The notes under the pieces are model-generated. The model was not told the origin of the DNA and made no database searches. It worked only from the letters and a program-made list of their open reading frames with translations. Shown one piece after another: positions 9,311-29,604 of a DNA stretch of 64,000 nucleotides. A program made the position numbers and the translations under genes. The number at the start of each line of letters is the position of its first letter. Positions within the stretch are counted from its first letter, which is position 1. Source of the stretch: Rebecca billardiae RCC1528 (Eukaryota > Protista > Haptophyta); NCBI GenBank assembly GCA_965240325.2, contig OZ251228.1:2046001-2110000 (forward strand), given 5' to 3'.

Positions 9311-11764
9311 ATGGCAAGGGCGATGGCGGCCGCTCGTCCCTGGGCCAACCCGGAGCTCCCAGAAGAACACGAGGCCGACGCCGAGGCGGACGATGACGCG
9401 GGGGCTGTTGATCCGGCCTTTATCATCTCGCTCCATCGCGCGCTCCTGCCGCCCCACGCGGGCGCGAGCGAGCCCGCGGGCGCTGAGAGCGCCAATGGCG
9501 GGCCCGCGGCCGAGCGCGACGAAGAGGTGCTGGAGGCCGCCGACGACGAGCGGATTCGCGCGTGCTGCCTCCTCTGGGACCTGACCGTGGTGCGGCACCA
9601 CGCGCTCTTCTGCCACGAGCACCATCTGGCGCCGTTGCTCCTGCGGTACCTCCACGCCGAGCCCGGCCGCCACTCGGCGCGATTGCTCGAGGTCTGCGCC
9701 GGCGCCCTCGCGAACCTCGCCGCTGTCGCCACGATTGCGCGAGCCTTGCTCGAGCGCGCAGATCTGCCTCACGTGCTGCTGCGCGCCATTCTTACCTCTT
9801 CCAGTGCCGACGTCCTCGCCGAGGCGCTGCGCCTCCTGAGCACGGCGCTCGCAGCGGCTGGCGGCGACACGGCGCGCGCGTGGGTACGCGCACACCTCGT
9901 GGCCGACTCCACCGAGGGCGGCTGCGCCGACGCAGTGGCGGCGCGTCTCGTCTTCATGCTGGGCAACAGCCGGCGCGCGCTGCTCGTCGAGCGATCGGCC
10001 TCCGTGCTCGAGGCGCTGCTCTACCACGCGCCCGAGCCAGCCATGCGCGCGCTCGGGCTGCTGCGAGGGGCGGACGGCCCGGGCGGCCATGCTGACGGGG
10101 GCTGGCCGGGCGGGGCCGGCACGGCCGGTGCTAGCCACGCCGCGGCCTCCGAGCGTGATACTAGCGGCGTGCAGCCCGCTCCCGCCAGCGCCGCCGACCC
10201 CGCCGAGCCCGGCGTGTGCGACGTCCTGCTCGGCCTCGTCGGCAGCGCCCTGCGCGCGTTCGCGCCGCCTGGGCCTGCTGCGAGCCCTGGCCCCGCACTG
10301 CTCGGGCCTCAGCCGGCTGCTGCTCGGAGCCCAGGGCAGGCGCGGGCTGCGGGGGATGCAGGGCAGCCGGCGGCCGGTCCTGCCGACGCAGTCTCGGCCC
10401 GCAGCCCCGCCGTGCTCGACACCTCTCCCGCCCCGCCGCGGCCGTGCGACGCCGCGGAGGAGGCGGAGGTGACAGAGCTGGCCCTCGCGTCGCTGCCGGC
10501 ACTCCTCGCCCTGTGCGAGAGGCTGCTGCTCGCTGCAGGCAGCACCGCGCGCGCCGGGGCGTGGCGCGTGAGCCCGGGTGAGCCACAGCACGCGGGCGAC
10601 GTGTTCGCGCACCCGTTCAGCGGTGCGGCCAGTGGCGCCGGTGCGGGCCAAGCCGGTGCGGGCCTTCTGACTCTCCTCAGCCACCCTCTGTGGCTCGCAG
10701 TGGGCGCGCTGCTCGGTGCGCAGGGCGATCTCGCGCTGCCGGCTGCGAGCGATGGCGCGGCGCTGGGCAGCCCGAGCACGTGGTTCGGCGCCGAGGAGGG
10801 CGCCGCTCACGATCGGGACGATGCCGGCCGGCAGCCCAGTGCCGACAGTTGGATCACACACCAAGACTCGGCGCCGCAGCGGGCCGCCCGCGCGCGCCCG
10901 CCCCACGCGGCCGAGGCTTCGTTTGGCCTCGGCTTCAGCGCAGAGATTTGCCTGGGCGTGTGCGCCACGCTGGACGCGCTGATGGGACTCGGCGCCACGC
11001 ACGGAGGCGAGCCGTGCGCCGCGGCCGCGACGGAGCTCGAGCACGCGGCGGGCGGCACGGGCGGCGCCGCAGCGCGCGCATGCTCGGATCTGACGGCCGT
11101 GGCGGCCGCGGCCGCACTCCGAGCGCTGTGCGGCGGCGGGGGCGCGCAGCAGTCCGTGCGCGCGCTGTGTGAGCTCATGCGCATCGGCGTCGCCACCGCG
11201 CGGGACGATGCGCGAGGCGCATGCGCGGCCACCGCCGAGGACGCCCCCGAGGCCGCGTCGCCGGCGGTGTGGGCGTGCCTCGTGCTGCTCAGCACTCCGC
11301 TCGACGGCATGGGCCTCGCCCTCGCGCACACGCCCCCGGCCAGGCCCCACGGGCGACGTCGGCGCGCCGGGCTCGCGGGTGCACGGGAGCTCACGCCCTG
11401 CGCGCCCAGCGCCGCCCGCGTGCCCACGCTGGACGAGGCGCTCGCCGACTGGACGCGGGAGCAGCGGCCTGTCTTCGACGAGCTCGTGCGCGGTGCGCGC
11501 GCCGTGTCGTGGGCGCACGGCCTCGTGCGCGCCGCCGCGCAGGCCGAGCGCTCGGCCGGCCGCGCCGAGGGCACTGCCGGGACTTGCGGCCTCGCGCGCG
11601 CTGAGGAGCTGGGCGCGAGATGCCTGGCGCGCGCTGTCGACGCGGGAGGCGTGCTCCACGCCGCGCGTCACCCGCTGCCGCTGGACGACCCGCTCGGCGT
11701 CGCCCTGGCGATGCTGCATGCCGCACTCGATGCGGAAGTGCAAGACGCGTGGCCATGGTCGTGA
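9311..11764 (+). CDS. SAAL1-like ARM-repeat protein
   Basis: CCLLWDLT..HALF..RLLEVCAGALANLA resembles the SAAL1 N-terminal ARM region; divergent from the 9201 gene across about 110 bp. Confidence 0.65.
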   Translation: MARAMAAARPWANPELPEEHEADAEADDDAGAVDPAFIISLHRALLPPHAGASEPAGAESANGGPAAERDEEVLEAADDERIRACCLLWDLTVVRHHALFCHEHHLAPLLLRYLHAEPGRHSARLLEVCAGALANLAAVATIARALLERADLPHVLLRAILTSSSADVLAEALRLLSTALAAAGGDTARAWVRAHLVADSTEGGCADAVAARLVFMLGNSRRALLVERSASVLEALLYHAPEPAMRALGLLRGADGPGGHADGGWPGGAGTAGASHAAASERDTSGVQPAPASAADPAEPGVCDVLLGLVGSALRAFAPPGPAASPGPALLGPQPAAARSPGQARAAGDAGQPAAGPADAVSARSPAVLDTSPAPPRPCDAAEEAEVTELALASLPALLALCERLLLAAGSTARAGAWRVSPGEPQHAGDVFAHPFSGAASGAGAGQAGAGLLTLLSHPLWLAVGALLGAQGDLALPAASDGAALGSPSTWFGAEEGAAHDRDDAGRQPSADSWITHQDSAPQRAARARPPHAAEASFGLGFSAEICLGVCATLDALMGLGATHGGEPCAAAATELEHAAGGTGGAAARACSDLTAVAAAAALRALCGGGGAQQSVRALCELMRIGVATARDDARGACAATAEDAPEAASPAVWACLVLLSTPLDGMGLALAHTPPARPHGRRRRAGLAGARELTPCAPSAARVPTLDEALADWTREQRPVFDELVRGARAVSWAHGLVRAAAQAERSAGRAEGTAGTCGLARAEELGARCLARAVDAGGVLHAARHPLPLDDPLGVALAMLHAALDAEVQDAWPWS

Positions 11765-11800
11765 ACATGCACGCGGACGACGGGTGGCCCGGGCGCCTAT

Positions 11801-11950
11801 GGGCGGTGCTCCCGATCCCGGCCCCGCTCCCGCAGGGGTGCAGGGCTGCGGGTGTCGCACTCCGTCTGGTCGGAAGGCGCGGACGCATACGAATATGTGT
11901 CTGCTAAGGTGTGACACTCTGACTACTCTGAGCCCGACGCTTGCCCGTTG
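11801..11950 (+). repeat. ~150-bp dispersed repeat with GC stem-loop (in every array unit; inverted copy at ~47575-47703)
   Basis: ggcggtgctcc..cccggccccgctccc-GCAG-gggtgcagggctgcggg...ctctgagcccgacgcttg is homologous to the reverse complement of 47575-47703. Confidence 0.75.
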
Positions 11951-11960
11951 CATATAGTGA

Positions 11961-13605
11961 TGGCCCGCGGTGCAGGGCGGAGCGCGCAGCGTGGAGCCCG
12001 CACCAGCGGGCCCGAACAACGTTTCAAAAAGATCTTTGATCAAGAAAAAAGGGACGGGGGACGATTTTCATGGCTGGAGGAGACCGAGTTTCGAATTTTG
12101 AGACCCTCTCTAACATGCATCACGGCCGAAAAAGGTCGCGCCCACGGCAAGTTCATAGTAAATAAGCGTGGAGTGACGCCCGTCCAAAAAACTTCACGCC
12201 CTTTAGGATCCCTAACGTAACGAACCGTTATAAGCGATTTTTCCGGCCAATGAGATTGCAGCAAGGTCCAAGGAGCGATGACGTATCTAGATAGAGATTG
12301 CCGCGAACCGATGTGACCATGTACGTCCCTTGAATCAGTTGAATCAACTATTCAATCGCGCCGTGTCTGTATCAGGAGCCGACGAGGCAAGGGTCAGTAG
12401 CCGATGGGCCAACCTCGGCGAATCTCAATACTATCTGACACCGGAGCGGGAGCCGGGGCGCGCGGGCCCGCGTTTTCTACGCCACGGCTGCGGCGAGACC
12501 GCGAGAGGATGAGGCGAGCTGACGAGCGACCGACGGGTGAGGACGGCGATGGGCAGGTGCGCGCGGCGAGTTGCGCCTGGAGCGCGCGGCTGCGGCGGGT
12601 CCCGACTGCCGTCGACATCGCGTTCGTGCCCCCGCTCACTCCGCGCGCCCCCGCCGCCCCGTGTCGATGCCTGCGCGCGGCCGCGCGCCGGTCGGCGCCT
12701 AGGCGCCCCGGCCGCGCCGCGGCAGCCGCCCTGTATTCGGGCGCTCGCAAGCTCGGGGGCAGCGGCGCCTGATGCCGGACTGATCGATCTCTGAGTCTTC
12801 GACTTCACCACGCGCCGCCCTTGCCATGCCTTTCCGGGGAGCGCCGACGATCCGAGTCCATCGTCGACCGGTCGACTCTGAGCGAGGGCTACGCCTCGGA
12901 ACTGAACGGTACTCTACGAGGAGGACGAGCTGCGCGGGCGACGGTGGTGCGTGACGTCCCCAGAGCTGGCTGTGCCTCTGCAACGCGTGCCGAGCCTGAT
13001 CGAGGTGTGTCAGCCCGTGCACGCGCGGCGTGCGCGAACGATCTGTGACTGGTGCCCAGTCGCACCTCCGACCTCGGCACCGTGCTCCCTCGGGCTGTCA
13101 GCTCCGCGTGGCCTGGCGTGCACGTCGAGTTGCGCTCATGCGTCGATCACGCCTCGCGCCCGCCTGTCGGCCGTCGCGCAGGCGCTGGTCGAACCCTACT
13201 CGGACCAGTGCAAATCACCTAACTATCCTGGCGCTGCCGCGGTGCGCGGTGACCCGCGGCGGGACAGCGGTCAGTCAGCAGCAGCGGCCCGAACGAATCC
13301 GCGGCCCCGCACCGTGCTCCCTGGCTGTCAGCTTCGCGTGGCCTGGCGTGCACGTGGAGTCGCGCTCATGCGTCGATCACGCCTCGTCGCATCCGCCTGT
13401 ACACAATCGGCGCCGCGCCGGCGGCTGCGAAGTGCGCCGATGGGCCCGCGCCCCGGGCGCGGCGGGCGGCGGCGCGCCGCTGGAGTCTAGTTGTACGGGC
13501 ATGCAACTCCGGGTCTGTCAATAGACGACTGCGATGGAGGGTGCACCGCCACCGCGGGCCCTGAACTACGTTCGTTCTACGGAAAAGGACCGCGGAACGC
13601 GGTCA
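11961..13605 (+). mobile_element. Non-autonomous Helitron2/Helentron-like element A
   Basis: 5' T+GGCCCGCGGTG(C) pairs with an internal IR at 12000-12012 and a subterminal IR at 13550-13560. 3' hairpin GACCGCG-GAA-CGCGGTC at 13588-13604. Inserted at A^T relative to the empty site at 26802. Confidence 0.75.
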
Positions 13606-13750
13606 TATACCATATATATATATGTGTGACACGTCGTTAACTATATGCAGCATATGCATCGCATCACTATATATATATATATCGTCATCAGCGCGCATCA
13701 TTGCGTGCGGAACTAAATATATATATATATATACTACTACACTAGCTAAT

Positions 13751-15100
13751 CTAATCGTAGTCGGACGAGGCGGATGACAGATCGGATGCCATCACCGTCC
13801 AATGGTCAGACTCATCATCAGTGTCTGTGTCACCGTGTGGCGACAGTCGGCAATCCGCCCCGTTGCCGCTCTCGAGTCTCCCGACCAGCGGCGGCGGTTG
13901 GGGCAGCTGCGGGGCGGCGTCCGAGACAGTGACAAGGTGGCTGGTGGGTTTGTGCCGGCGCGTCGCTGTGCGCGTGCCCTGATCGCCAGCGCCATGCTCC
14001 AGTCTGCGCTTGGCAATGGCGAGCCGAGTGTTAACCATGCCGACCAGCTTGTGTTCAGCGCACCGGCTGGCGCGCGTGTCACCCGGCATGCCGAACGAAG
14101 GCCACTTGGTGCAGCCGGTGTGATCACACTTGCGGCTCTTCACGTCGACCATGCCGGCCAGCTTGTGCGTGGCGCACCGGCTGGCGCGCGCGTCGCCCGG
14201 CATGCCGAAGTTAGGCCGTGTGGTGCAGCCGGTGTGATCACACTTGCGGCTCTTCACGTCGGCCATGCCGGCCAGCTTGTGCGTACCGCACCGGCTGGCG
14301 CGCGCGTCGCCCGGCATGCCGAATGAAGGCCCCTTGGTGCAGCCGGTGTGATCACACTTGCGGCTCTTCACGTCGACCATGCCGCCCAGCTTGTGCGCAG
14401 CGCACCGGCTGGCGCGCGCGTCGCCCGGCATGCCGAAGTAAGGCCCCTTGGTGCAGCCGGTGTGATCACACTTGGGGCTCCTCACGTCGACCATGCCGCC
14501 CAGCTTGTGCGTACCGCACCGGCTGGCGCGCGCGTCGCCCGGCATGCCGAATGAAGGCTGCGTGGTGCAGCCGATGTGATCACACTTGCGGCTCTTCACG
14601 TGGACCATGCCGGCCAGCTTGTGCGCAGCGCACCGGCTGGCGCGCGCGTCGCCCAGCATGCCGAACGAAGGCACCTTGGTGCAGCCGGTGTGATCACACT
14701 TGGGGCTCCTCACGTCGACCATGCCGGCCAGCTTGTGCGTACCGCACCGGCTGGCGCGCGCGTCGCCCGGCATGCCGAACGAAGGCTGGTTGGTGCAGCC
14801 GGTGTGATCACACTTGCGGCTCTTCACGTCGACCATGCCGGCCAGCTTGTGCGTACCGCACCGGCTGGCGCGCGCGTCGCCCGGCATGCCGAATGATGGC
14901 CGCGTGGTGCAGCCGATGTGATCACACTTGCGGCTCTTCACGTCGACCATGCCGGCCAGCTTGTGCACAGCGCACCGGCTGGCGCGCGCGTCGCCCGGCA
15001 GCGTCACCCGGACGGGCGCGCGTGGTGCGGCGAGCTCGTCCGCCGGGCCGCGCCAGTTCACCGGATCCACGCCCGCGCGATTCCAAGATCGAGGTTTCAT
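13751..15100 (-). CDS. EsV-1-7-type repeat protein, copy 2 (8 repeats, tail type B)
   Basis: Same 38-aa repeat; start MKPRSW assumed. Confidence 0.75.
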   Translation of the reverse strand: MKPRSWNRAGVDPVNWRGPADELAAPRAPVRVTLPGDARASRCAVHKLAGMVDVKSRKCDHIGCTTRPSFGMPGDARASRCGTHKLAGMVDVKSRKCDHTGCTNQPSFGMPGDARASRCGTHKLAGMVDVRSPKCDHTGCTKVPSFGMLGDARASRCAAHKLAGMVHVKSRKCDHIGCTTQPSFGMPGDARASRCGTHKLGGMVDVRSPKCDHTGCTKGPYFGMPGDARASRCAAHKLGGMVDVKSRKCDHTGCTKGPSFGMPGDARASRCGTHKLAGMADVKSRKCDHTGCTTRPNFGMPGDARASRCATHKLAGMVDVKSRKCDHTGCTKWPSFGMPGDTRASRCAEHKLVGMVNTRLAIAKRRLEHGAGDQGTRTATRRHKPTSHLVTVSDAAPQLPQPPPLVGRLESGNGADCRLSPHGDTDTDDESDHWTVMASDLSSASSDYD

Positions 15101-15164
15101 CAGCCGCCAATGCTCATCAGCTTTCGGAGCGGAATTGCATGCCCTGCCGCATCCCTGACGCACA

Positions 15165-15830
15165 ATGGCGGGCGCGAGGAGCAACGCGACGGGGCGGTCG
15201 CGCTGAGCGCCGCGTTCGTTTCGTACAGCTCCTTCATCCTCGTGCCGGAGCACCGGCTCCTCTTCTGCAAGATCGACCAGGTCGTGAGCCAGAACTTCGT
15301 GCAGCTCTTCCGCGCGGTCCGCGCGCCGCACGACCCGGCGCTGCGCAAGCAGCTGTTCGTGCAGAACACCAACACGCTGCGCTACTTCGGGCTGGGCGTG
15401 GAGGACGGCGCGGCGCGGCTGGAGGAGCCGGCGTGGCACGCCGCCGTCGTCTACAGAGTGCCGCTCGAGCACTTCGCCTCGGCGTACGCGTCCATGTGCA
15501 CCGCGGGCCGTGACATGGACGGCGCGCGCCATTGCTCGGAGGCATTCGGCGTGTCGCGCCCCAGCTTCGACGAGGCGGCGGCAGCGCTCGGGCGAGGGCG
15601 CGTGCGCAACGGCATCAAATGCGGCAGTCTGAGCACTGCGGCGGGCTCAGCGCCACCCTCGGCGCGTACAAGACGATCGAGCGCCTCGAGCCGATGCGCG
15701 CGCGCGCGCAGCCGTCGAGCGCATGCTGCGCGCGGTCGGGGTGGACGTGCGCGCGCTGGCGCCCGAGCTGGACAAGCTGTTCCCCGACGAGCACGCGCGC
15801 GCGGCGCGGCTGCGGAGCGTCGAGCCGGGC
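15165..15830 (+). pseudogene. Frameshifted Sulfotransfer_2-like fragment (unit 1)
   Basis: ILVPEHRLLFCKI..VV, YRVPLEHFASAY, then QSEHCGGL in another frame. Confidence 0.55.
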
Positions 15831-15961
15831 GACGGCGCTCCGCGCAAGCGGCCGGCGCCGCAGCTCGCGGACGGGTGGCGGCGTGCGTGGGCAAAGCGGC
15901 GCGCGCCCGCCGCGCCGAGCGGCGCGTTGCCCTCGAGGCCGAGCGCGCGCGCGCCAAGGAG

Positions 15962-16585
15962 ATGGCGCTGCAGGCCTTCTCGACAATCTCGTACCACGGC
16001 ACGGCGTTCGGCGCGCTGCGCACGCTGTACGACGACGGCTCGCGGCCGGACGGCCGGCCGCTCGCCGTCGGCGCCTCGCCGCCGCCGCGCCGCCCTGCGG
16101 CGCGCGGCACGCCCGAGTCGGCGCACGCGCTGCCGCCCGCGCGCACGCCCAAGCGCGCCGCCGTGCCGCTGCCGACGCTCGGCCGCGTCGGGCTGGTCCC
16201 CGCGCCGGGCGGCGAGGGGTCGGAGGAGGAGGAGAGCCGCGTGCCCACGCTGGACGAGGCGCTCGCCGACTGGACGCGGGAGCAGCGGCCTGTCTTCGAC
16301 GAGCTCGTGCGCAGTGCGCGCGCCGTGTCGTGCGCGCACGGCCTCGTGCGCGCCGCCGCGCAGGCCGAGCGCTCGGCCGGCCGCGCCGAGGGCACTGCCG
16401 GGACTTGCGGCCTCGCGCGCGCTGAGGAGCTGGGCGCGAGATGCCTGGCGCGCGCTGTCGACGCGGGAGGCGTGCTCCACGCCGCGCGTCACCCGCTGCC
16501 GCTGGACGACCCGCTCGGCGTCGCCCTGGCGATGCTGCATGCCGCACTCGATGCGGAAGTGCAAGACGCGTGGCCATGGTCGTGA
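15962..16585 (+). other. Chimeric 207-aa junction ORF
   Basis: MALQAF..EEEES fused in frame to RVPTLDEAL..AWPWS (SAAL1-like C-terminus). Confidence 0.6.
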
Positions 16586-16787
16586 ACATGCACGCGGACG
16601 ACGGGTGGCCCGGGCGCCTATGGGCGGTGCTCCCGATCCCGGCCCCGCTCCCGCAGGGGTGCAGGGCTGCGGGTGTCGCACTCCGTCTGGTCGGAAGGCG
16701 CGGACGGCATACGAATATGTGTCTGCTAAGGTGTGACACTCGCTGACTACTCTGAGCCCGACGCTTGCCCGTTTGCATATATAGTGA

Positions 16788-18796
16788 TGGCCCGCGGTGC
16801 AGGGCGGAGCGCGCAGCGTGGAGCCCGCACCAGCGGGCCCGAACCACGTTTCAAAAAGATCTTTGATCAAGAAAAAAGGGACGGGGGGGCGATTTTTAGG
16901 GCTGGCGGAGACCGAGTTTCGAGTTTTTGAGATCGCATAGAGAGGTCTATTAGGCCGAAAAAAACCGCGCCCAGCTGATTCCCTTAAGTAAAGTGCGATC
17001 CGGACGTCAGCTGGACGTGACAATGTTAGTGTAACGGTTCGTTACGAGCGCGATTTTAAGTATGAGATTGCCGCCAACCGCCAACCGATAAAAACGGCAA
17101 GGCAAGGGATCGGGAAACTTGATCACTTATTCTAACTGTGAATAGTAAAATGCTCTCCCCGAGCGCGCCTGTCGCCTCGCAGGCCGCGCGTCTCGCCCCT
17201 CGCTCCGCTCTCCCCGAGGCTGAGCTCGCGGCCCGCCTGTCACCTCGCAGGCGCGCGCCACGGACACATGCGCGACGAGATCGCGGCGGGGGCGGCGAGA
17301 TCGCGGCGGGGGCGACGGGCAACAACCTGCCCGCGGGCGCGTTCGTCACTCGAGGAGCAGCGCGCAAGGGCGAGCCGAGTCCGGAGCACGCGAGCTCGTC
17401 GCTCGCCGACCGGAGCAGAGCGCGCCGCCCGCCGCCGCCGAGCGAGCGGCGCGGCAGAGCTGATGAGCCGGATGCGCCCGGAGCTCGCGCGGCTGAAGGG
17501 CGAGCTCGAGCACGCGAGCTCGCGCCTCGACGCCGAGCCCGAGCTCCTCCTCAACTCGGTCGACGGCGGCGCGGAGGTCCGGCAGCAGCGTGAGGACTCA
17601 CAGACAGTGTGAGTGAGCCGCGCGCAGCTCAGCCTGCCGCTGGCAGCCGCCGTCTTCGAGGCCGACGCGGCGGAGGAGGCGGCGGGCGACGAGATCGCGG
17701 CGGGGGCGGCGAGATCGCGGCGGGGGCGACGGGCAACAACCTGCCCGCGGGCGCGTTCGTCACTCGAGGAGCAGCGCGCAAGGGCGAGCCGAGTCCGGAG
17801 CACGCGAGCTCGTCGCTCGCCGACCGGAGCAGAGCGCGCCGCCCGCCGCCGCCGAGCGAGCGGCGCGGCAGAGCTGATGAGCCGGATGCGCCCGGAGCTC
17901 GCGCGGCTGAAGGGCGAGCTCGAGCACGCGAGCTCGCGCCTCGACGCCGAGCCCGAGCTCCTCCTCAACTCGGTCGACGGCGGCGCGGAGGTCCGGCAGC
18001 AGCGTGAGGACTCACAGACAGTGTGAGTGAGCCGCGCGCAGCTCAGCCTGCCGCTGGCAGCCGCCGTCTTCGAGGCCGACGCGGCGGAGGAGGCGGCGGG
18101 CGAGCACGGCGGCGCGGTGGAGCAGGCGCGCACGCGAGGCGGCAGGCGCGACGCGCCGCTCGCCTCGTTCCACCGCCCCGAGCTCCGCTCGGTCGGTCTC
18201 GGTGCGCGGCTGCGCAGCCGGCAGGCCGGCGGGCCAGCAGTCTGCAGTGGCGCGCGCTCTCGCTCTGCCGGCACGAGGCGTGCCGGCTGAGCGACCAGCG
18301 GCCCGTCGTCGAGCGCATGGCGCAGGGCGAGTACCTCAAGCAGGTGCGCCCGCTCGCGCGCACGCGCCGGCTCGCGACCAGCGGCCCTTCGTCGAGCGCA
18401 TGGCGCAGCGCGAGCACCTTGCAAGCTGAAGCAGGTGCGCCCGCACGCGCGCACGCGCCGGCCCGGCGCCGCGCGGCGCCTCTCGCCCTCTCGCCCTGCG
18501 CGCGCCGCCGCCCCGCTTCCCCGCGCGGCCCGTCCGCGCCTCTCGCCCTGCGAGCGCGCCGCCCCGCTTCCCCGCGCGGCCCGTCCGCTGGTGTCCCATG
18601 CCACCCTTGATGGCCGTGCGCGCCCGCATACTCGCGCCGAGTCCGAGACTCGGTCTCGGGTCTGACTCTCCCTCTCAGAGTGGCTGAACTGTCTTTCTGA
18701 CTCGGACTGACTGACTCGTCAGTCTCATTCTCAACCACTGCGCCGCGGGCCCCCAACTGCGTTGGTTCTACGGAAAAGGACCGCGGAACGCGGTCA
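16788..18796 (+). mobile_element. Non-autonomous Helitron2/Helentron-like element B with an internal 414-bp tandem duplication (17272-18099)
   Basis: Same termini as element A (TGGCCCGCGG...GACCGCGGAACGCGGTCA), same target position, different interior. Confidence 0.75.
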
Positions 18797-18800
18797 TATA

Positions 18801-18802
<2 letters not shown>

Positions 18803-18880
<78 letters not shown>
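18803..18880. repeat. (TA)n microsatellite
   Basis: Direct reading. Confidence 0.97.
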
Positions 18881-18883
<3 letters not shown>

Positions 18884-18982
18884 ACACGTCGTTAACTATA
18901 TGCATCATGCATCGCATCATTACTATCGTCATCAGCGGCGCGCATCATTGCGTGCGGAACTAATTATACCACACTAGCCAAT

Positions 18983-20446
18983 CTAACCGTAGTCGGACGA
19001 GGCGGATGACAGATCGGATGCCATCACCGTCCAATGGTCAGACTCATCATCAGTGTCTGTGTCACCGTGTGGCGGCAGTCGGCAATCCGCCCCGTTGCTG
19101 CCCTCGAGTCTCCCGACCAGCGGCGGCGGTTGGGGCAGCTGCGGGGCGGCGTCCGAGACAGTGACAAGGTGGCTGGTGGGTTTGTGCCGGCGCGTCGCTG
19201 TGCGCGTGCCCTGATCGCCAGCGCCATGCTCCAGTCTGCGCTTGGGGATGGCGAGCCGAGTGTTAACCATGCTGACCAGCTTGTGTTCAGCGCACCGGCT
19301 GGCGCGCGTGTCACCCGGCATGCCGAACGCAGGCTGCTGGGTGCAGCCGGTGTGATCACACTTGTGGCTCTTCATGTTGACCATGCCGGCCAGCTTGTGC
19401 GCAGCGCACCGGCTGGCGCGCGCGTCGCCCGGCATGCCGAAGTTAGGCCCCTTGGTGCAGCCGGTGTGATCACACTTGGGGTGCTTCAAGTCGACCATGC
19501 CGGCCAGCTTGTGCGCAGCGCACCGGCTGGCGCGCGCGTCGCCCGGCATGCCGAAGTTAGGCCCCTTGGTGCAGCCGGTGTGATCACACTTGCGGCTCTT
19601 CACGTCGACCATGCCAGCCAGCTTGTGCGCAGCGCACCGGCTGGCGCGCGCGTCGCCCAGCATGCCGAAGTTAGGCTGCTTGGTGCAGCCGGTGTGATCA
19701 CAATTGCGGCTCTTCACGTCGACCATGCCGGCCAGCTTGTGCGCAGCGCACCGGCTGGCGCGCGCGTCGCCCGGCATGCCGAAGTTAGGCTGCTTGGTGC
19801 AGCCGGTGTGATCACACTTGGGGTACTTCAAGTCGACCATGCCGGCCAGCTTGTGCGCAGCGCACCGGCTGGCGCGCGCGTCGCCCAGCATGCCGAAGTT
19901 AGGCCCCTTGGTGCAGCCGGTGTGATCACACTTGCGGCTCTTCACGTCGACCATGCCGGCCAGCTTGTGCGCAGCGCACCGGCTGGCGCGCGCGTCGCCC
20001 AGCATGCCGAAGTTAGGCTGCTTGGTGCAGCCGGTGTGATCACACTTGCGGCTCTTCACGTCGACCATGCCGGCCAGCTTGTGCGTAGCGCACCGGCTGG
20101 CGCGCGCGTCACCCGGCATGCCGAAGTTAGGCTGCTTGGTGCAGCCGGTGTGATCACACTTGCGGCTCTTCACGTCGACCATGCCGGCCAGCTTGTGCGT
20201 AGCGCACCGGCTGGCGCGCGCGTCACCCGGCATGCCGAAGTTAGGCTGCTTGGTGCAGCCGGTGTGATCACACTTGCGGCTCTTCACGTCGACCATGCCG
20301 GCCAGCTTGTGCACAGCGCACCGGCTGGCGCGCGCGTCGCCCGGCAGCGTCACCCGGACGGGCGCGCGTGGTGCGGCGAGCTCGTCCGCCGGGCCGCGCC
20401 AGTTCACCGGATCCACGCCCGCGCGATTCCAAGATCGAGGTTTCAT
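18983..20446 (-). CDS. EsV-1-7-type repeat protein, copy 3 (9 repeats, tail type B)
   Basis: Repeats mostly KQPNF/KGPNF. Confidence 0.75.
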   Translation of the reverse strand: MKPRSWNRAGVDPVNWRGPADELAAPRAPVRVTLPGDARASRCAVHKLAGMVDVKSRKCDHTGCTKQPNFGMPGDARASRCATHKLAGMVDVKSRKCDHTGCTKQPNFGMPGDARASRCATHKLAGMVDVKSRKCDHTGCTKQPNFGMLGDARASRCAAHKLAGMVDVKSRKCDHTGCTKGPNFGMLGDARASRCAAHKLAGMVDLKYPKCDHTGCTKQPNFGMPGDARASRCAAHKLAGMVDVKSRNCDHTGCTKQPNFGMLGDARASRCAAHKLAGMVDVKSRKCDHTGCTKGPNFGMPGDARASRCAAHKLAGMVDLKHPKCDHTGCTKGPNFGMPGDARASRCAAHKLAGMVNMKSHKCDHTGCTQQPAFGMPGDTRASRCAEHKLVSMVNTRLAIPKRRLEHGAGDQGTRTATRRHKPTSHLVTVSDAAPQLPQPPPLVGRLEGSNGADCRLPPHGDTDTDDESDHWTVMASDLSSASSDYG

Positions 20447-20510
20447 CAGCCGCCAATGGTCATCAGCTTTCGGAGCGGAATTGCATGCCCTGCCGCATCC
20501 CTGACGCACA

Positions 20511-21175
20511 ATGGCGGGCGCGAGGAGCAACGCGACGGGGCGGTCGCGCTGAGCGCCGCGTTCGTTTCGTACAGCTCCTTCATCCTCGTGCCGGAGCACC
20601 GGCTCCTCTTCTGCAAGATCGACCAGGTCGTGAGCCAGAACTTCGTGCAGCTCTTCCGCGCGGTCCGCGCGCCGCACGACCCGGCGCTGCGCAAGCAGCT
20701 GTTCGTGCAGGACACCAACACGCTGCGCTACTTCGGGATGGGCGCGGAGGACGGCGCGGCGCGGCTGGCCGAACCGGCCTGGCAGGCCGCCGTCGTCTAC
20801 AGAGTGCCGCTCGAGCGCTTCGCCTCGGCGTACGCGTCCATGTGCACCGCGGGCCGTGACATGGACGGCGCGCGCCATTGCTCGGAGGCATTCGGCGTGT
20901 CGCGCCCCAGCTTCGACGAGGCGGCGGCAGCGCTCGGGCGAGGGCGCGTGCGCAACGGCATCAAATGCGGCAGTCTGAGCACTGCAGCGGGCTCAGCGCC
21001 ACCCTCGGCGCGTGCAAAACGTTCGAGCGCCTCGATCTGACGCGCGCGCACGCAGCCGTCGAGCGCATGCTGCGCGCGGTCGGGGTGGACGTGCGCGCGC
21101 TGGCGCCCGAGCTGGACAAGCTGTTCCCCGACGAGCACGCGCGCGCGGCGCGGCTGCGGAGCGTCGAGCCGGGCG
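20511..21175 (+). pseudogene. Frameshifted Sulfotransfer_2-like fragment (unit 2)
   Basis: LLFCKI, YRVPLERFASAY; frameshifts. Confidence 0.55.
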
Positions 21176-21305
21176 ACGGCGCTCCGCGCAAGCGGCCGGC
21201 GCCGCAGCTCGCGGACGGGTAGCGGCGTGCGTGGGCAAAGCGGCGCGCGCCCGCCGCGCCGAGCGGCGCGGTGCCCTCGAGGCCGAGCGCGCGCGCGCAT
21301 AGGAG

Positions 21306-21929
21306 ATGGCGCTGCAGGCCTTCTCGAGCATTTCGTACCACGGCACGGCGTTCGGCGCGCTGCGCACGCTGTACGACGACGGCTCGCGGCCGGACGGCCG
21401 GCCGCTCGCCGTCGGCGCCTCGCCGCCGCCGCGCCGCCCCGCGGCGCGCGGCACGCCCGAGTCGGCGCCCGCGCTGCCGCCCGCGCGCACGCCCAAGCGC
21501 GCCGCCGCGCCGCTGCCGACGCTCGGCTGCGTCGGGCTGATCCCCGCGCCGGGCGGCGAGGGGTCGGAGGAGGAGGAGAGCCGCGTGCCCACGCTGGACG
21601 AGGCGCTCGCCGACTGGACGCGGGAGCAGCGGCCTGTCTTCGACGAGCTCGTGCGCGGTGCGCGCGCCGTGTCGTGGGCGCACGGCCTCGTGCGCGCCGC
21701 CGCGCAGGCCGAGTGCTCGGCCGGCCGCGCCGAGGGCACTGCCGGGGCTTGCGGCCTCGCGCGCGCTGAGGAGCTGGGCGCGAGATGCCTGGCGCGCGCT
21801 GTCGACGCGGGAGGCGTGCTCCACGCCGCGCGTCACCCGCTGCCGCTGGACGACCCGCTCGGCGTCGCCCTGGCGATGCTGCATGCCGCACTCGATGCGG
21901 AAGTGCAAGACGCGTGGCCATGGTCGTGA
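21306..21929 (+). other. Chimeric 207-aa junction ORF
   Basis: As 15962-16585. Confidence 0.6.
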
Positions 21930-22141
21930 ACATGCACGCGGACGACGGGTGGCCCGGGCGCCTATAGGCGGTGCTCCATCGCGGCCCCGCTCCCGCAAGG
22001 GGGCAGGGCTGCGGGTGTCGCACTCCTCTGGTCGGAAGGCGCGGACGCATACGAATATGTGTCTGCTGCTGTGTGACACTCTCTGACTAACTCTGAGCCC
22101 GACGCTTGCCCGTTGCATATATATATAGAATTATAGTGATA

Positions 22142-24086
22142 TGACCGCGTTCCGCGGTCCTTTTCCGTAGAACCAACGCAGTTGGGGGCCCGCGGCGCAG
22201 TGGTTGAGAATGAGACCGTGACGTCGTCAATCCGCACGGTCTGGCGTCTGCCTGGCAGTCAGACAGGCCGAGCCGCACCGTCTCGGAGAGTGAGTGAGAG
22301 TCAGACCCGTCCGTCGGACTCGCGGCGCGTGAATGGGCGCGCCGACGGCCAAGGGTGGCACGGGACACCAGCGGACGGGCCGCGCGGGGAAGCGGGGCGG
22401 CGCGCGCGCAGGGCGAGAGGCGCGGACGGGCCGCGCGGGGAAGCGGGGCGGCGCGCGTGCAGGGCGAGAGGCGCCGCGCGGCGCGGGCCGGCGCGTGCGC
22501 GCGCGCGCGCGCACCTGCTTGAGGTGCTCGCGCTGCGCCATGCGCTCGACGAAGGGCCGCTGGTCGCTCAGCCGGCGCGCCTCAGGCCGGCATAGCGAGA
22601 GCGCGCGCCACTGCTGCCCGCCCACGCTGCGCAGCCACGCGCAGACCGAGCGGAGCTCGGGGTGGGACGAAGCGAGTGGCGTGTCGCGCCCGCCGCCAGG
22701 CGCACGCGTGCCCTGCTCCGCACCGCGCCGCCGTGCTCGCCCGCCGCCTGCTCCGCCGCGTCGGCCTCGAGGATGGCGGCGGCCAGCGGCAGGCTGAGCG
22801 GCGCGCGCTCGCCCACCGTAGCTTCGAGGGCCGTCCACACCTGCTCGAGCTGCTGCAGGGCGTGGACAAGGGCAGCGCGCGCGCCCAGCGCATCCGTGCC
22901 GCGTGACGCAGCGCGTCGAGCTCGGCGTCTCGCTTCGCCAGCTCGGCGCCCAGCGCCTCTGCGCGCACGCGTCGAGCTCGGCGTCGCGCTTTGCCAGCTC
23001 GGCGCCCAGCGCCTTCACGCGCACGTGCTCGTGTATCTGCGCGCGCACGGCCTGCGCGCCGCCGCCCATCTGCGCGCGCAGACTCGGACTCGTCGCGGCT
23101 GGCTGCTAGGGAGTGCTAGGGTGCGCGCCGCGTAGTCGATGGCCAAGGCCTGCAGCCAGCGCGCCTGCACCGAGAAAAGAAGGCGCGGCACGCGCGCTAT
23201 AACCCAGTCCACGCAGACACGCGAGCGCGTGCTGGAGCGGCGCGCCGGGGCAACCGTCCACGTCGGCCGCGCGGGAGCCGCAGGTACTCTCGCGTGCCTG
23301 CGCGACGCAGCGCGCACGCACAGCGAAACGGGCGCGGGGTAGAATTCAGGAGAGCGCCGCCGCCCGCGCACCACCCCACCGAGAGTGCGCACATGCGCAC
23401 GCCACGACATGGCACGACATGGCGCACGAGTCGGACGCAACGCCCGACAGACAGAAGCCTTCGAACATCCGCGCGCGCCCGCAAACGCGGCCGCGCGCGC
23501 GGGCGGGCGCGCGGGCGTGCGTGCGCCACCCGCGCGGGAGGCGCCCGCGGCCGCGCGGGCGGCGCGCGCGCGGCGCGCGCTCCGCGCGGTCGTCCACACC
23601 GATGGCGGTCGATCGAGGGCGACGAGGGCTCGCCCCGTTTTTGGAGCGAGCGCGTGCCGCGCGCCCCCTGGCCCCCAACTGGGTATGATAATACCCACAA
23701 TTACCCAAAATGACCTTATGCCCCCAACACCGTTAGCGAGCCAATGTACTGATATGATAGACTGAACGAGAGTACCCACAATTACCCAATCTATCATTTT
23801 ACTATGGTCACACTAGAACGAGAGTCTACCCACAAAATTTACCCAGCCTGGCACAGTTGGGCGTGGGTTTCGTTGATTCCTCTGTTCACTATTCAAGACG
23901 GCGGACGCGACCTTTTTCGACGCTAATCCATGTGTTAGGAGGTCTCAAAAAATCGAAACTCGGTCTCCCCACTCTGGAAAACACCGCCCCGTCCCTTTTT
24001 TCTTTGATCAAAGATCTTTTTGAAACGTGGTTCGGGCCCGCTGGTGCGGGCTCCACGCTGCGCGCTCCGCCCTGCACCGCGGGCCA
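22142..24086 (-). mobile_element. Non-autonomous Helitron2/Helentron-like element C (inverted)
   Basis: TGACCGCGTTCCGCGGTC at left and GCACCGCGGGCCA at right are the reverse complements of the A/B termini; 22200-22810 is homologous to 18030-18720. Confidence 0.75.
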
Positions 24087-24201
24087 TCAACCACGCATAT
24101 ACTTGTGACGTGTACGTGACACGTCGTTAACTATGCATCGCATCAGCACTATCGTCATCAGCGCGCATCATTGCGGAACAAAATTTACTACACTAGCTAA
24201 T

Positions 24202-25104
24202 CTAATCGTAGTCGGACGAGGCGGATGACAGATCGGATGCCATCACCGTCCAATGGTCAGACTCATCGGCATCAGTGTCTGTGTCACCGTGTGGCGGCAG
24301 TCGGCAATCCGCCCCGTTGCCTCTCTCGAGTCTCCCGACCAGCGGCGGCGGTGGTTGGGGCAGCTGCGGGGCGGCGTCCGGGACAGTGACACTGAGGTGG
24401 CTGGTGGGTTTGTGCCGGCGCGTCGCTGTGCGCGTGCCCTGATCGCCAGCGCCATGCTCCAGTCTGCGCTTGGCGATGGCGAGCCGAGTGTTAACCATGC
24501 TGACCAGCTTGTGTTCAGCGCACCGGCTGGCGCGCGTGTCACCCGGCATGCCGAACGAAGGCCACTTGGTGCAGCCGGTGTGATCACACTTGTGGCTCTT
24601 CACGTCGACCATGCCGGCCAGCTTGTGCGCAGCGCACCGGCTGGCGCGCGCGTCGCCCAGCATGCCGAACGAAGGCACCTTGGTGCAGCCGGTGTGATCA
24701 CACTTGCGGCTCTTCACGTGGACCATGCCGGCCAGCTTGTGCGCAGCGCACCGGCTGGCGCGCGCGTCGCCCAGCATGCCGAACGAAGGCACCTTGGTGC
24801 AGCCGGTGTGATCACACTTGCGGCTCTGCACGTCGACCATGCCGCCCAGCTTGTGCACAGCGCACCGGCTGGCGCGCGCATCGCCCAGCATGCCGAATGA
24901 AGGCCGCGTGGTGCAGCCGATGTGATCACACTTGCGGCTCTTCACGTCGACCATGCCGGCCAGCTTGTGCACAGCGCACCGGCTGGCGCGCGCGTCGCCC
25001 GGCAGCGTCACCCGGACGGGCGCGCGTGGTGCGGCGAGCTCGTCCGCCGGGCCGCGCCAGTTCACCGGATCCACGCCCGCGCGATTCCAAGATCGAGGTT
25101 TCAT
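24202..25104 (-). CDS. EsV-1-7-type repeat protein, copy 4 (4 repeats, tail type B)
   Basis: Variable pairs TR, KV, KV, KW. Confidence 0.72.
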   Translation of the reverse strand: MKPRSWNRAGVDPVNWRGPADELAAPRAPVRVTLPGDARASRCAVHKLAGMVDVKSRKCDHIGCTTRPSFGMLGDARASRCAVHKLGGMVDVQSRKCDHTGCTKVPSFGMLGDARASRCAAHKLAGMVHVKSRKCDHTGCTKVPSFGMLGDARASRCAAHKLAGMVDVKSHKCDHTGCTKWPSFGMPGDTRASRCAEHKLVSMVNTRLAIAKRRLEHGAGDQGTRTATRRHKPTSHLSVTVPDAAPQLPQPPPPLVGRLERGNGADCRLPPHGDTDTDADESDHWTVMASDLSSASSDYD

Positions 25105-25168
25105 CAGCCGCCAATGGTCATCAGCTTTCGGAGCGGAATTGCATGCCCTGCCGCATCCCTGACGCACA

Positions 25169-25830
25169 ATGGCGGGCGCGAGGAGCAACGCGACGGGGCG
25201 GTCGCGCTGAGCGCCGCGTTCGTTTCGTACAGCTCCTTCATCCTCGTGCCGGAGCACCGGCTCCTCTTCTGCAAGATCGACCAGGTCGTGAGCCAGAACT
25301 TCGTGCAGCTCTTCCGCGCGGTCCGCGCGCCGCACAACCCGGCGCTGCGCAAGCAGCTGTTCGTGCAGAACACCAACACGCTGCGCTACTTCGGGCTGGG
25401 CGTGGAGGACGGCGCGGCGCGGCTGGCCGAACCGGCCTGGCAGGCCGCCGTCGTCTACAGAGTGCCGCTCGAGCGCTTCGCCTCGGCGTACGCGTCCATG
25501 TGCACCGCGGGCCGTGACATGGACGGCGCGCGCCATTGCTCGGAGGCATTCGGCGTGTCGCGCCCCAGCTTCGACGAGGCGGCGGCAGCGCTCGGGCGAG
25601 GGCGCGTGCGCAACGGCATCAAATGCGGCAGTCTGAGCACTGCAGCGGGCTCAGCGCCACCCTCGGCGCGTGCAAAACGTTCGAGCGCCTCGAGCCGACG
25701 CGCGCGCACGCAGCCGTCGAGCGCATGCTGCGCGCGGTCGGGGTGGACGTGCGCGCGCTGGCGCCCGAGCTGGACAAGCTGTTCCCCGACGAGCACGCGC
25801 GCGCGGCGCGGCTGTGGAGCGTCGAGCCGG
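25169..25830 (+). pseudogene. Frameshifted Sulfotransfer_2-like fragment (unit 3)
   Basis: Same motifs and frameshifts as unit 2. Confidence 0.55.
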
Positions 25831-25963
25831 GCGACGGCGCTCCGCGCAAGCGGCCGGCGCCGCAGCTCGCGGACGGGTGGCGGCGTGCGTGGGCAAAGCG
25901 GCGCGCGCCCGCCGCGCCGAGCGGCGCGTTGCCCTCGAGGCCGAGCGCGCGCGCGCATAGGAG

Positions 25964-26587
25964 ATGGCGCTGCAGGCCTTCTCGAGCATTTCGTACCACG
26001 GCACGGCGTTCGGCGCGCTGCGCACGCTGTACGACGACGGCTCGCGGCCGGACGGCCGGCCGCTCGCCGTCGGCGCCTCGCCGCCGCCGCGCCGCCCTGC
26101 GGCGCGCGGCACGCCCGAGTCGGCGCACGCGCTGCCGCCCGCGCGCACGCCCAAGCGCGCCGCCGTGCCGCTGCCGACGCTCGGCCGCGTCGGGCTGATC
26201 CCCGCGCCGGGCGGCGAGAGGTCGGAGGAGAAGGAGAGCCGCGTGCCCACGCTGGACGAGGCGCTCGCCGACTGGACGCGGGAGCAGCGGCCTGTCTTCG
26301 ACGAGCTCGTGCGCAGTGCGCGCGCCGTGTCGTGCGCGCACGGCCTCGTGCGCGCCGCCGCGCAGGCCGAGCGCTCGGCCGGCCGCGCCGAGGGCACTGC
26401 CGGGACTTGCGGCCTCGCGCGCGCTGAGGAGCTGGGCGCGAGATGCCTGGCGCGCGCTGTCGACGCGGGAGGCGTGCTCCACGCCGCGCGTCACCCGCTG
26501 CCGCTGGACGACCCGCTCGGCGTCGCCCTGGCGATGCTGCATGCCGCACTCGATGCGGAAGTGCAAGACGCGTGGCCATGGTCGTGA
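25964..26587 (+). other. Chimeric 207-aa junction ORF
   Basis: As 15962-16585. Confidence 0.6.
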
Positions 26588-26790
26588 ACATGCACGCGGA
26601 CGACGGGTGGCCCGGGCGCCTATGGGCGGTGCTCCCGATCCCGGCCCCGCTCCCGCAGGGGTGCAGGGCTGCGGGTGTCGCACTCCGTCTGGTCGGAAGG
26701 CGCGGACGCATACGAATAATAATCCGAATATGTGTCTGCTAAGGTGACAGGTGTGACACTCTGACTACTCTGAGCCCGACGCTTGCCCGT

Positions 26791-26812
26791 TGCATATAGT
26801 GATATACCATAT
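26791..26812. other. Empty target site tgcatatagtga^tataccat
   Basis: Exact join of the flanks of elements A and B. Confidence 0.9.
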
Positions 26813-26932
26813 ATATGTATGTGACACGTCGTTAACTATATGCATCATGCATCGCATCACTATCGTCATCAGCGCGCATCATCATTGCGTGCGGAACTAA
26901 ATATATACGACTACAGTACTACACTAGCTAAT

Positions 26933-27940
26933 CTAATCGCAGTCGGACGAGGCGGATGACAGATCGGATGCCATCACCGTCCAATGGTCAGACTCATCAT
27001 CAGTGTCTGTGTCACCGTGTGGCGGCAGTCGGCAATCCGCCCCGTTGCCTCTCTCGAGTCTCCCGACCAGCGACGGCGGTTGGGGCAGCTGCGGGGCGGC
27101 GTCCGAGACAGTGACAAGGTGGCTGGTGGGTTTGTGCCGGCGCGTCGCTGTGCGCGTGCCCTGATCGCCAGCGCCATGCTCCAGTCTGCGCTTGGGGATG
27201 GCGAGCCGAGTGTTAACCATGCTGACCAGCTTGTGTTCAGCGCACCGGCTGGCGCGCGTGTCACCCGGCATGCCGAACGAAGGCCACTTGGTGCAGCCGG
27301 TGTGATCACACTTGGGGTTCTTCACGTCGACCATGCCGGCCAGCTTGTGCGTGGCGCACCGGCTGGCGCGCGCGTCGCCCGGCATGCCGAAGTTAGGCCG
27401 TGTGGTGCAGCCGGTGTGATCACACTTGCGGCTCTTCACGTCGGCCATGCCGGCCAGCTTGTGCGTACCGCACCGGCTGGCGCGCGCGTCGCCCGGCATG
27501 CCGAATGAAGGCCCCTTGGTGCAGCCGGTGTGATCACACTTGCGGCTCTTCACGTCGACCATGCCGGCCAGCTTGTGCGCAGCGCACCGGCTGGCGCGCG
27601 CGTCGCCCGGCATGCCGAAGTAAGGCCCCTTGGTGCAGCCGGTGTGATCACACTTGGGGCTCCTCACGTCGACCATGCCGCCCAGCTTGTGCGCAGCGCA
27701 CCGGCTGGCGCGCGCGTCGCCCGGCATGCCGAATGAAGGCTGCGTGGTGCAGCCGATGTGATCACACTTGCGGCTCTTCACGTCGACCATGCCGGCCAGC
27801 TTGTGCACAGCGCACCGGCTGGCGCGCGCGTCGCCCGGCAGCGTCACCCGGACGGGCGCGCGTGGTGCGGCGAGCTCGTCCGCCGGGCCGCGCCAGTTCA
27901 CCGGATCCACGCCCGCGCGATTCCAAGATCGAGGTTTCAT
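26933..27940 (-). CDS. EsV-1-7-type repeat protein, copy 5 (5 repeats, tail type B)
   Basis: Variable pairs TQ, KG, KG, TR, KW, matching repeats 4-8 of copy 2. Confidence 0.72.
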   Translation of the reverse strand: MKPRSWNRAGVDPVNWRGPADELAAPRAPVRVTLPGDARASRCAVHKLAGMVDVKSRKCDHIGCTTQPSFGMPGDARASRCAAHKLGGMVDVRSPKCDHTGCTKGPYFGMPGDARASRCAAHKLAGMVDVKSRKCDHTGCTKGPSFGMPGDARASRCGTHKLAGMADVKSRKCDHTGCTTRPNFGMPGDARASRCATHKLAGMVDVKNPKCDHTGCTKWPSFGMPGDTRASRCAEHKLVSMVNTRLAIPKRRLEHGAGDQGTRTATRRHKPTSHLVTVSDAAPQLPQPPSLVGRLERGNGADCRLPPHGDTDTDDESDHWTVMASDLSSASSDCD

Positions 27941-28008
27941 CAGCCGCCAATGGTCATCAGCATTCTTTCGGAGCGGAATTGCATGCCCTGCCGCATCCCT
28001 GACGCACA

Positions 28009-28670
28009 ATGGCGGGCGCGAGGAGCAACGCGACGGGGCGGTCGCGCTGAGCGCCGCGTTCGTTTCGTACAGCTCCTTCATCCTCGTGCCGGAGCACCGG
28101 CTCCTCTTCTGCAAGATCGACCAGGCCGCGAGCCAGAACTTCGTGCAGCTCTTCCGCGCGGTCCGCACGCCGCACGACCCGGCGCTGCGCAAGCAGCTGT
28201 TCGTGCAGAACACCAACACGCTGCGCTACTTCGGGCTGGGCGTGGAGGACGGCGCGGTGCGGCTGGCCGAACCGGCCTGGCAGGCCGCCGTCGTCTACAG
28301 AGTGCCGCTCGAGCGCTTCGCCTCGGCGTACGCGTCCATGTGCACCGCGGGCCGTGACATGGACGGCGCGCGCCATTGCTCGGAGGCATTCGGCGTGTCG
28401 CGCCCCAGCTTCGACGAGGCGGCGGCAGCGCTCGGGCGAGGGCGCGTGCGCAACGGCATCAGATGCGGCAGTCTGAGCACTGCAGCGGGCTCAGCGCCAC
28501 CCTCGGCGCTTGCAAAACGTTCGAGCGCCTCGAGCCGACGCGCGCGCACGCAGCCGTCGAGCGTATGCTGCGCGCGGTCGGGGTGGACGTGCGCGCGCTG
28601 GCGCCCGAGCTGGACAAGCTGTTCCCCGACGAGCACGCGCGCGCGGCGCTGCTGCGAAGCGTCGAGCCGG
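28009..28670 (+). pseudogene. Frameshifted Sulfotransfer_2-like fragment (unit 4)
   Basis: Same motifs as the other units. Confidence 0.55.
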
Positions 28671-28803
28671 GCGACGGCGCTCCGCGCAAGCGGCCGGCGC
28701 CGCAGCTCGCGGACGGGTGGCGGCGTGCGTGGGCAAAGCGGCGCGCGCCCGCCGCGCCGAGCGGCGCGTTGTGCTCGAGGCCGAGCGCGCGCGCGCCAAG
28801 GAG

Positions 28804-29454
28804 ATGGCGCTGCAGGCCTTCTCGACAATCTCGTACCACGGCACGGCGTTCGGCGCGCTGCGCACGCTGTACGACGACGGCTCGCGGCCGGACGGCCGGC
28901 CGCTCGCCGTCGGCGCCTCGCCGCCGCCGCGCCGCCCCGCCGCGCGCGGCACGCCCGAGTCGGCGCACGCGCTGCCGCCCGCGCGCACGCCCAAGCGCGC
29001 CGCCGCGCCGCTGCCGACGCTCGGCCGCGTCGGGCTGATCCCCGCGCCGGGCGGCGAGGGGTCGGAGGAGGAGGAGGACCGCAGGGGCTCGAGCGAGGGC
29101 ACCGCCGAGCGCGTCTCGCGCTCGTGCGAGGCGTTCCACCGCTCGTGGGCCGCGGCGGGGAGCACGCGCTCGATCGCGCAGGCCAAGATGCACCACGCGC
29201 GCATCAACACGCGCAAGTCGACGCGCCGCCTCACCGACCGGCTCTCGCAGGCGCAGGTGGAGGCGACCGCGCTCACCGCGCCGGTGGCACAGCACGTGGT
29301 GATCCCGCTGCCGCGCGTCATGGCGGCCGAGCAGGACGAGACGGTCGAGTCCGTCGACATCGGCAAGCGCCCGGCGCTCGGCGGCCTGGGCACCGTCTCT
29401 GCGCGCACGGGCGGGGGCGCCGAGCTGGGCGTGCTCAGCGCGGCGTCCATGTAG
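28804..29454 (+). CDS. Hypothetical protein, probably a 5'-truncated gene fragment (native continuation of the array unit end)
   Basis: Coding-like codon usage; MALQAF...EEEEDRRGSS...SAASM*. Confidence 0.45.
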   Translation: MALQAFSTISYHGTAFGALRTLYDDGSRPDGRPLAVGASPPPRRPAARGTPESAHALPPARTPKRAAAPLPTLGRVGLIPAPGGEGSEEEEDRRGSSEGTAERVSRSCEAFHRSWAAAGSTRSIAQAKMHHARINTRKSTRRLTDRLSQAQVEATALTAPVAQHVVIPLPRVMAAEQDETVESVDIGKRPALGGLGTVSARTGGGAELGVLSAASM

Positions 29455-29604
29455 CAGAATTGATGTCAGAGTGTATGTAGGTTATGTAGGCTCAATCGGC
29501 GGCCGGCGGATGATTCGTAGAGTGGACGCATGTTACGTGCGCATGTGAACTCGTCGCGATGAGTCCGGCCCGACGGAGTGCACGGCGGCCCCAAGGCCCA
29601 CCTT

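Follow-up and report, generated by a model that had tools for sequence, protein, structure and literature searches.

Why should three neighbouring copies of a host spacer each hold a different insert at apparently the same position, when a fourth copy holds none? The question is raised by a 64 kb stretch of the Rebecca billardiae RCC1528 genome (GCA_965240325.2, contig OZ251228.1, positions 2,046,001 to 2,110,000; ‘the window’ throughout, with a G+C content of ~69%), in which self-comparison delineates a tandem array of four host periods (11416–29082), each carrying a gene of the EsV-1-7 repeat type. A spacer located ~546 bp into each period is interrupted in periods 1 to 3 by the elements that we call A, B and C, and is uninterrupted in period 4. 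We think it probable that these are different, non-autonomous representatives of a Helitron2-like family that is multicopy and presumably of the HUH type, and that they inserted independently of each other at a short target once the host unit had been duplicated.

Three filled sites and an empty one

Reading the array from left to right, element A (1645 bp) occupies positions 11962–13606 of the plus strand and element B (2009 bp) positions 16789–18797 of the same strand; element C (1945 bp; 22141–24085) lies on the minus strand, inverted with respect to the other two. A 22-nt probe for the 5′ terminus and a 20-nt probe for the 3′ terminus each find three exact matches in the window, with 0.02–0.04 expected by chance; the places, sizes and orientations given by the initial annotation of this locus stand. 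The host sequence lies to either side of each insert—11416–11961 and 13607–16236 in period 1, 16237–16788 and 18798–21580 in period 2, 21581–22140 and 24086–26238 in period 3—and in one piece (26239–29082) in period 4. Outside the repeats and the spacer, the host periods are 97–99% identical to each other; for the stretch that runs from spacer to repeats the figure is 93–97%.

The empty target of period 4 reads GTGAT^ATACC (GTGATATACC; 26799–26808, plus strand), the caret here and below marking the bond, which in this case lies between 26803 and 26804; it is the sole TGAT^AT in a spacer of ~190 nt. With A or B excised in silico, the rejoined flanks reproduce period 4 base for base around this bond (...GCATATAGTGAT to its left, ATACCATATA... 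to its right), making this the exact empty site that had been proposed, and one that shows no footprint. In element orientation, all three junctions likewise read as previously described: TGA^TGG...TCA^TAT. With an AT dinucleotide present at both junctions, the boundaries are fixed only to within two bases, such that the junction can be read as TGA^T, as TGAT^A, or as a 2-bp duplication of AT. Counting the AT as part of the 3′ end places A, B and C at one and the same bond, GTGAT^AT.

A 2-bp offset had also been claimed for C. This depends upon the assignment of the AT, C otherwise sitting at the same bond as A and B; what does survive is a pair of extra bases in its far flank (ATCAACC, as opposed to ATACC), generating the palindrome TGAT^ATCA and with it a TGAT on the bottom strand. 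That motif either belonged to the target site or was carried across from a donor site; this spacer is lacking at the two further EsV-1-7 genes that the window contains, which hence offer no outgroup for the two bases.

The spacer itself is short, AT-rich, positioned beside a (TA)n tract and flanked by GC-rich genes. When empty, it contains six copies of TGAT, two of [G/T]TGAT and only one that is followed by AT; each period offers exactly one TGAT^AT, and if [G/T]TGAT^AT is the target, every insertion into a period would therefore use the same bond. The shorter TGATA occurs once per period, and the more degenerate TNATA, rare in this genome, at 88 sites over both strands of the 64 kb, this last motif being one that cannot occur inside (TA)n tracts. 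The (TA)n tract adjoining the insertion site varies strongly in length, with 39 repeats after B (18803–18880) and few in the other periods.

Ends, interiors and further copies

The three elements are near-identical at their 5′ ends and share a common 3′ end, as first reported: the initial 88 nt are identical save for one base, similarity continuing to ~142–182 nt at 86–96%, and the last 55 nt are 93–100% identical. Conservation is thus strongly asymmetric, with ~140 nt at the 5′ end versus 55 nt at the 3′ end. Each 5′ end carries an asymmetric inverted repeat, GGCCCGCGGTG, that begins 0–2 nt from the terminus and pairs with bases ~40 nt downstream to produce a terminal hairpin (11962–12012 in A, plus strand; fold of −23.5 kcal/mol, z −3.35); the same hairpin sequence is found in B (16789–16839, plus strand) and in C (24035–24085, minus strand). 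Towards the other end, the reverse complement of the 5′-terminal 9–14 nt is found 46 nt before the 3′ terminus, matching at 11 of 11 positions in A (CACCGCGGGCC; 13550–13560, plus strand) and at 14 of 15 in both B and C. After this subterminal repeat comes a small hairpin, in which a compensatory C-G to G-C change distinguishes A from B and C, and then a terminal hairpin with a 7-bp stem and GAA loop (13588–13604 in A and 18779–18795 in B, both plus strand; 22143–22159 in C, minus strand), which finishes two bases—the AT—short of the 3′ end. The termini proper form a poor inverted repeat; the inverted copy of the 5′ end is subterminal. A brute-force hairpin scan was swamped by the (TA)n tracts and added nothing.

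Between these ends, the elements differ. The interior of A finds no match in B or C, and contains a ~92-bp repeat of its own (13077–13167 and 13309–13400). The 3′ halves of B and C are related, at ~90% identity in aligned blocks with many insertions and deletions; their 5′ halves are unrelated. Pfam, tRNA and Rfam scans reveal no recognisable gene, tRNA or Rfam match inside any of the three. In B, moreover, a 414-bp unit stands twice in tandem without a single difference (17272–18103; 100% identity), owing either to a very recent duplication inside the element or to an artefact of assembly.

Host units that are 1–3% diverged, set beside element termini that are 92–96% identical and interiors that are non-homologous, indicate that such differences cannot have arisen by divergence over the same span of time. 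Furthermore, no tree is common to units and elements: the 5′ ends place A nearest to B, the 3′ ends of B and C do not differ, and in the left flank it is period 3 that stands apart. A mirroring of unit phylogeny by element phylogeny, named in the initial annotation as the mark of one ancestral insertion, is therefore not seen. Taken together with the differing interiors and the opposite orientation of C, independent insertion of different family members at homologous sites is the parsimonious reading and—as judged from the sequence—a well-supported one, in agreement with the proposal made at the outset.

Copies elsewhere are visible in short Logan contigs from two public runs (X1 and X2), which we compared with positions 22001–28000 of the window. 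In X1, word depth reaches 120–160 at the termini of C, as against ~9 on exact interior contigs, and contigs diverge at 22195–22199 and at 23987, where the shared ends stop; the termini must accordingly exist in multiple copies and adjoin other interiors, the family numbering, by rough estimate, some tens of copies genome-wide. One X2 contig runs into the element from a 5′ flank of ...CTAGTGAT (ending TAGTGAT), one X1 contig does so from a flank of GATTGAT, and two X2 contigs carry other 3′ flanks. Including the A/B site (AGTGAT) and that of C (GGTTGAT), four independent 5′ flanks end in TGAT, preceded in each case by G or T; the remainder of the flanks is unrelated, from which it follows that the target is short and resident in the flank, rather than a long homing site. 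Targeting is, as had been suspected, stricter than a bare A^T.

Closer to hand, the intergenic sequence just to the right of the array contains a degenerate 3′-end relic of the family (29567–29699, plus strand; nhmmer E 0.0026). It occupies a non-homologous site, so the family has also used another location nearby, and is possibly a mini-element of ~133 bp with a 5′-like GGCCCG start. Neither terminus has an exact match among the JGI metagenome contigs scanned, nor does the 5′ terminus among viral contigs. 

Two side observations concern the same contigs. A low-depth X1 contig joins window position 24090 to 26955, so that a family 5′ end preceded by TTGAT is separated by 12 other bases from an EsV-1-7 paralogue's 3′ end, which suggests that a further member of the family sits directly at the stop codon of a different EsV-1-7 gene. 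X2 is labelled as a different organism from X1, and its contigs match the interior of C (22268–22422 and 23180–23394) without differences; either one species is present under two labels, or the element is common to both taxa.

Relationship to Helitron2 and other mobile elements

The elements were initially described as rolling-circle-like, and the arrangement of hairpins and inverted repeats agrees with this. It most resembles Helitron2 (HLE2), as defined by Bao and Jurka (2013; PMC3627910) from a 5′ asymmetric inverted repeat 0–2 nt from the end, a 5′ hairpin, a subterminal 3′ partner and a 3′ hairpin, in a set that includes non-autonomous families of Chlamydomonas reinhardtii. The layout of 5′ repeat and hairpin is the same here, as is the order of subterminal partner then hairpin at the 3′ end, and there too non-autonomous copies have only their ends in common, with mosaic interiors. 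The 3′ repeat, however, lies 46 nt from the end as compared with 20–30 nt in that description (PMC3627910), and the expected RepHel partner (a Y2 HUH nuclease with a Pif1-type helicase) is not found among the 115 window open reading frames of at least 180 amino acids.

A close parallel is offered by FoHeli1 and FoHeli2 of Fusarium oxysporum, which are of Helitron2 layout, with GAA-loop hairpins, a 3′ repeat 38–51 bp from the end and a preferred target of TNAT^A (PMC5148889). All three features accommodate the elements described here: the loops are alike, 46 nt falls inside that range, and TGAT^AT satisfies TNAT^A; moreover, a one-base ambiguity affects the 5′ boundary in both. Against this, the FoHeli termini (TCAG...ATATTTT) are unrelated to those of A, B and C, the elements themselves are autonomous and 5–6 kb in length where ours are non-coding and 1.6–2.0 kb, and their host is a fungus as opposed to a GC-rich, alga-like eukaryote. 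The canonical Helitron (Helitron1), with its 5′ TC, 3′ CTRR and a single hairpin 10–12 nt from the 3′ end, was considered and rejected, our elements reading (T)GGCCC...GGTCA(T) with two terminal hairpins.

In the choice of target there is a parallel with the IS200/IS605 family, of which ISDra2 always inserts 3′ of TTGAT (PMC2806898) and IS608 (target TTAC) reads its tetranucleotide by base pairing (PMC5934647). Here also, the element lies always 3′ of a flank-resident motif of 4–5 nt ([G/T]TGAT at four independent loci), its right end closes with a comparable tetranucleotide (TCAT), both ends bear hairpins, and insertion is orientation-specific with no clear duplication. These are nevertheless prokaryotic elements, with a Y1 TnpA (there is none in our window) and other distances from hairpin to cleavage site. 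The family is not known to occur in eukaryotic nuclear genomes, and we regard the resemblance as functional only, with no family membership implied. 

Replitrons (PMC10288648) are a eukaryotic, algal group of HUH elements whose non-autonomous relatives share ends of ~50 nt and a right-end hairpin, but their defining features are short direct repeats at the termini and a Y1 Rep, whereas the ends here consist of inverted repeats and hairpins. Membership was rejected: the only terminal direct repeat, CGCGGT, derives from a palindromic CCGCGG core, and there is no Rep in the window.

Drawing on Helitrons and IS200/IS605 by analogy, we infer both the enzyme and a single-stranded intermediate, as follows. 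A transposase supplied in trans would bind the 5′ hairpin with its inverted repeat, as well as the 3′ inverted repeat with its hairpins; its nicks in single-stranded DNA would follow the TGAT of the left junction and the TCAT of the right end, and the cut element would then be joined 3′ of a target TGAT. Insertion would thus take place directly 3′ of [G/T]TGAT and ahead of AT, in an orientation-specific manner and without a clear target-site duplication, each event being separate and later than the tandem duplication of the host unit. A short AT-rich stretch beside (TA)n, between GC-rich genes, would probably tolerate such insertions, and four near-identical copies of the site would present four chances, with every hit on the same bond.

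Several observations weigh against this account. A Pfam scan of the 115 open reading frames detected no RepHel, Pif1, HUH, DDE, recombinase or any other transposase domain, so the autonomous partner for which the initial annotation had proposed a search is not found in the window; this, together with the lack of genes in the elements, is the reason that we call A, B and C non-autonomous, and it means that the class of enzyme is read from the element ends alone. The general Helitron2/Helentron target is T^T, and GTGATATACC has no TT, the bond being A^T or T^A. With neither a transposase in the window nor a T^T target, membership of Helitron2 is to be regarded as unproven. The junctions are compatible with a 2-bp AT duplication just as they are with the absence of one. 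GTGAT^AT also occurs at 36057, 40763, 44332 and 49719 of the window, all four of them empty, and the filling of three out of four neighbouring sites, by a family of roughly tens of copies genome-wide, is far above what a short motif would lead one to expect. Lastly, none of the public-run contigs spans a junction, so the assembly gains no independent confirmation from them.

Host setting and the local excess of insertions

The four EsV-1-7 genes are all on the minus strand (period 1, 13751–15532; period 2, 18983–20878; period 3, 24202–25536; period 4, 26933–28219); that of period 2 matches PF19114 with an E of 3e-128 and ten repeats, the others being its paralogues. Their stop codons lie 116–185 nt from the insertion site, which is consequently just 3′ of each gene, as annotated. 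The 114-nt EsV-1-7 repeat is present in ~8.5 copies at 14034–15000, ~9.5 at 19266–20346, ~4.5 at 24494–25004 and ~5.5 at 27216–27840, and this variation in number among the four paralogues indicates that unequal exchange is active within the genes. The remainder of each period is occupied by long open reading frames on both strands (15600–16850 and paralogues), ending ~50 nt from the insertion site; these have no match in Pfam or the protein atlas, the latter look-up, with the unit's plus-strand frame, being uninformative, and one strand or neither may be coding there. Rfam and tRNA scans across the array were blank.

Is it then the locus, rather than a short motif, that draws these elements in? 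The initial annotation had envisaged strong sequence-specific homing. A version of this idea that we consider unlikely is that the family, or its transposase, reads far more than [G/T]TGAT (the sequence or structure of the spacer) or is tethered to EsV-1-7 3′ ends, making the spacer a preferred landing pad. Held to be just as doubtful is its fuller form: a Helitron2-like HUH family with a specific landing site, composed of [G/T]TGAT^AT and a (TA)n-flanked, AT-rich spacer at EsV-1-7 3′ ends, that is loaded repeatedly and whose target may be read by the element itself, as in IS608. The contrast between three of four adjacent sites filled and four GTGAT^AT sites left empty elsewhere in the window speaks for such homing, as does the X1 contig in which a family 5′ end adjoins another EsV-1-7 paralogue at its 3′ end; this last joint, however, could be detected only because each side of it matches the stretch under query, an ascertainment bias. 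In favour of homing, too, the empty site is bracketed by a 10-bp inverted repeat, GCATATAGT...ACTATATGC (26791–26800 and 26835–26844), present in three of the four spacers, including those of A and B, but broken at the site of C; folded as single-stranded DNA, however, the empty site does not exceed shuffled sequence in stability (z −0.5 and −1.0). In addition, the X2 copy and the relic at 29567–29699 lie in unrelated flanks, the two contig copies having only [G/T]TGAT in common with the array sites, and no such element is seen beside either of the two remaining EsV-1-7 genes of the window. Homing to a long sequence is not supported by these findings.

We think it rather improbable that a single ancestral insertion was copied along with the host unit, its interiors later being swapped for those of other family members by ectopic gene conversion or break repair via the shared ends, with one copy inverted and another lost. 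The junctions of A and B are identical to the base, the array does undergo unequal exchange (repeat numbers differing between periods), and shared ends of ~140 and 55 nt are long enough to support homologous repair. Such a history would nevertheless require at least two interior replacements, one inversion and one precise loss, in a host only 1–3% diverged whose inserts have non-homologous interiors; the empty site bears no footprint, and the two-base difference in the flank of C creates a bottom-strand TGAT, as would be anticipated for a fresh insertion in the inverted orientation. Least credible of all is that A, B and C are cut-and-paste DNA transposons with a 2-bp AT target-site duplication and not HUH elements: there is AT at both ends of every copy seen and a single AT at the empty site, but the true terminal inverted repeat is poor, with a subterminal partner for the 5′ end, the conserved ends are asymmetric (140 versus 55 nt), an extra conserved TG is found in the 5′ flank only, no DDE transposase is encoded among the window open reading frames, and no transposon superfamily is known to make an AT duplication.

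The local excess may stem from a longer or structural target, from easy melting beside the (TA)n tract, from tolerance of insertions, or from one old insertion that was copied and remodelled. An integron-like array, the picture originally offered, resembles this locus only in that differing inserts stand at equivalent positions in a row. It was rejected: no integrase, recombinase, transposase, attI or attC-like partner is present in the window, the inserts are non-coding transposons with no recognisable gene and with one of them inverted, and the ‘array’ is a tandem duplication of host genes. 

We therefore view the locus as a clear case of short-motif target choice, and not as a new integron-like system. 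Its four near-identical sites—three filled, one of these in the inverted orientation, and one empty—constitute a natural experiment that fixes the boundaries of the family to within two bases, and that reveals TGAT^AT, rather than T^T, as the target of a non-canonical, Helitron2-like family. This is of use for transposon annotation in very GC-rich algal genomes, where the standard Helitron rules fail, and illustrates how homing can be mimicked by a short motif that GC-rich DNA seldom offers and that lies in tandemly repeated, safe spacers. Should the local excess instead reflect an extended target, the family would become a candidate site-specific inserter of single-stranded DNA in a eukaryote.

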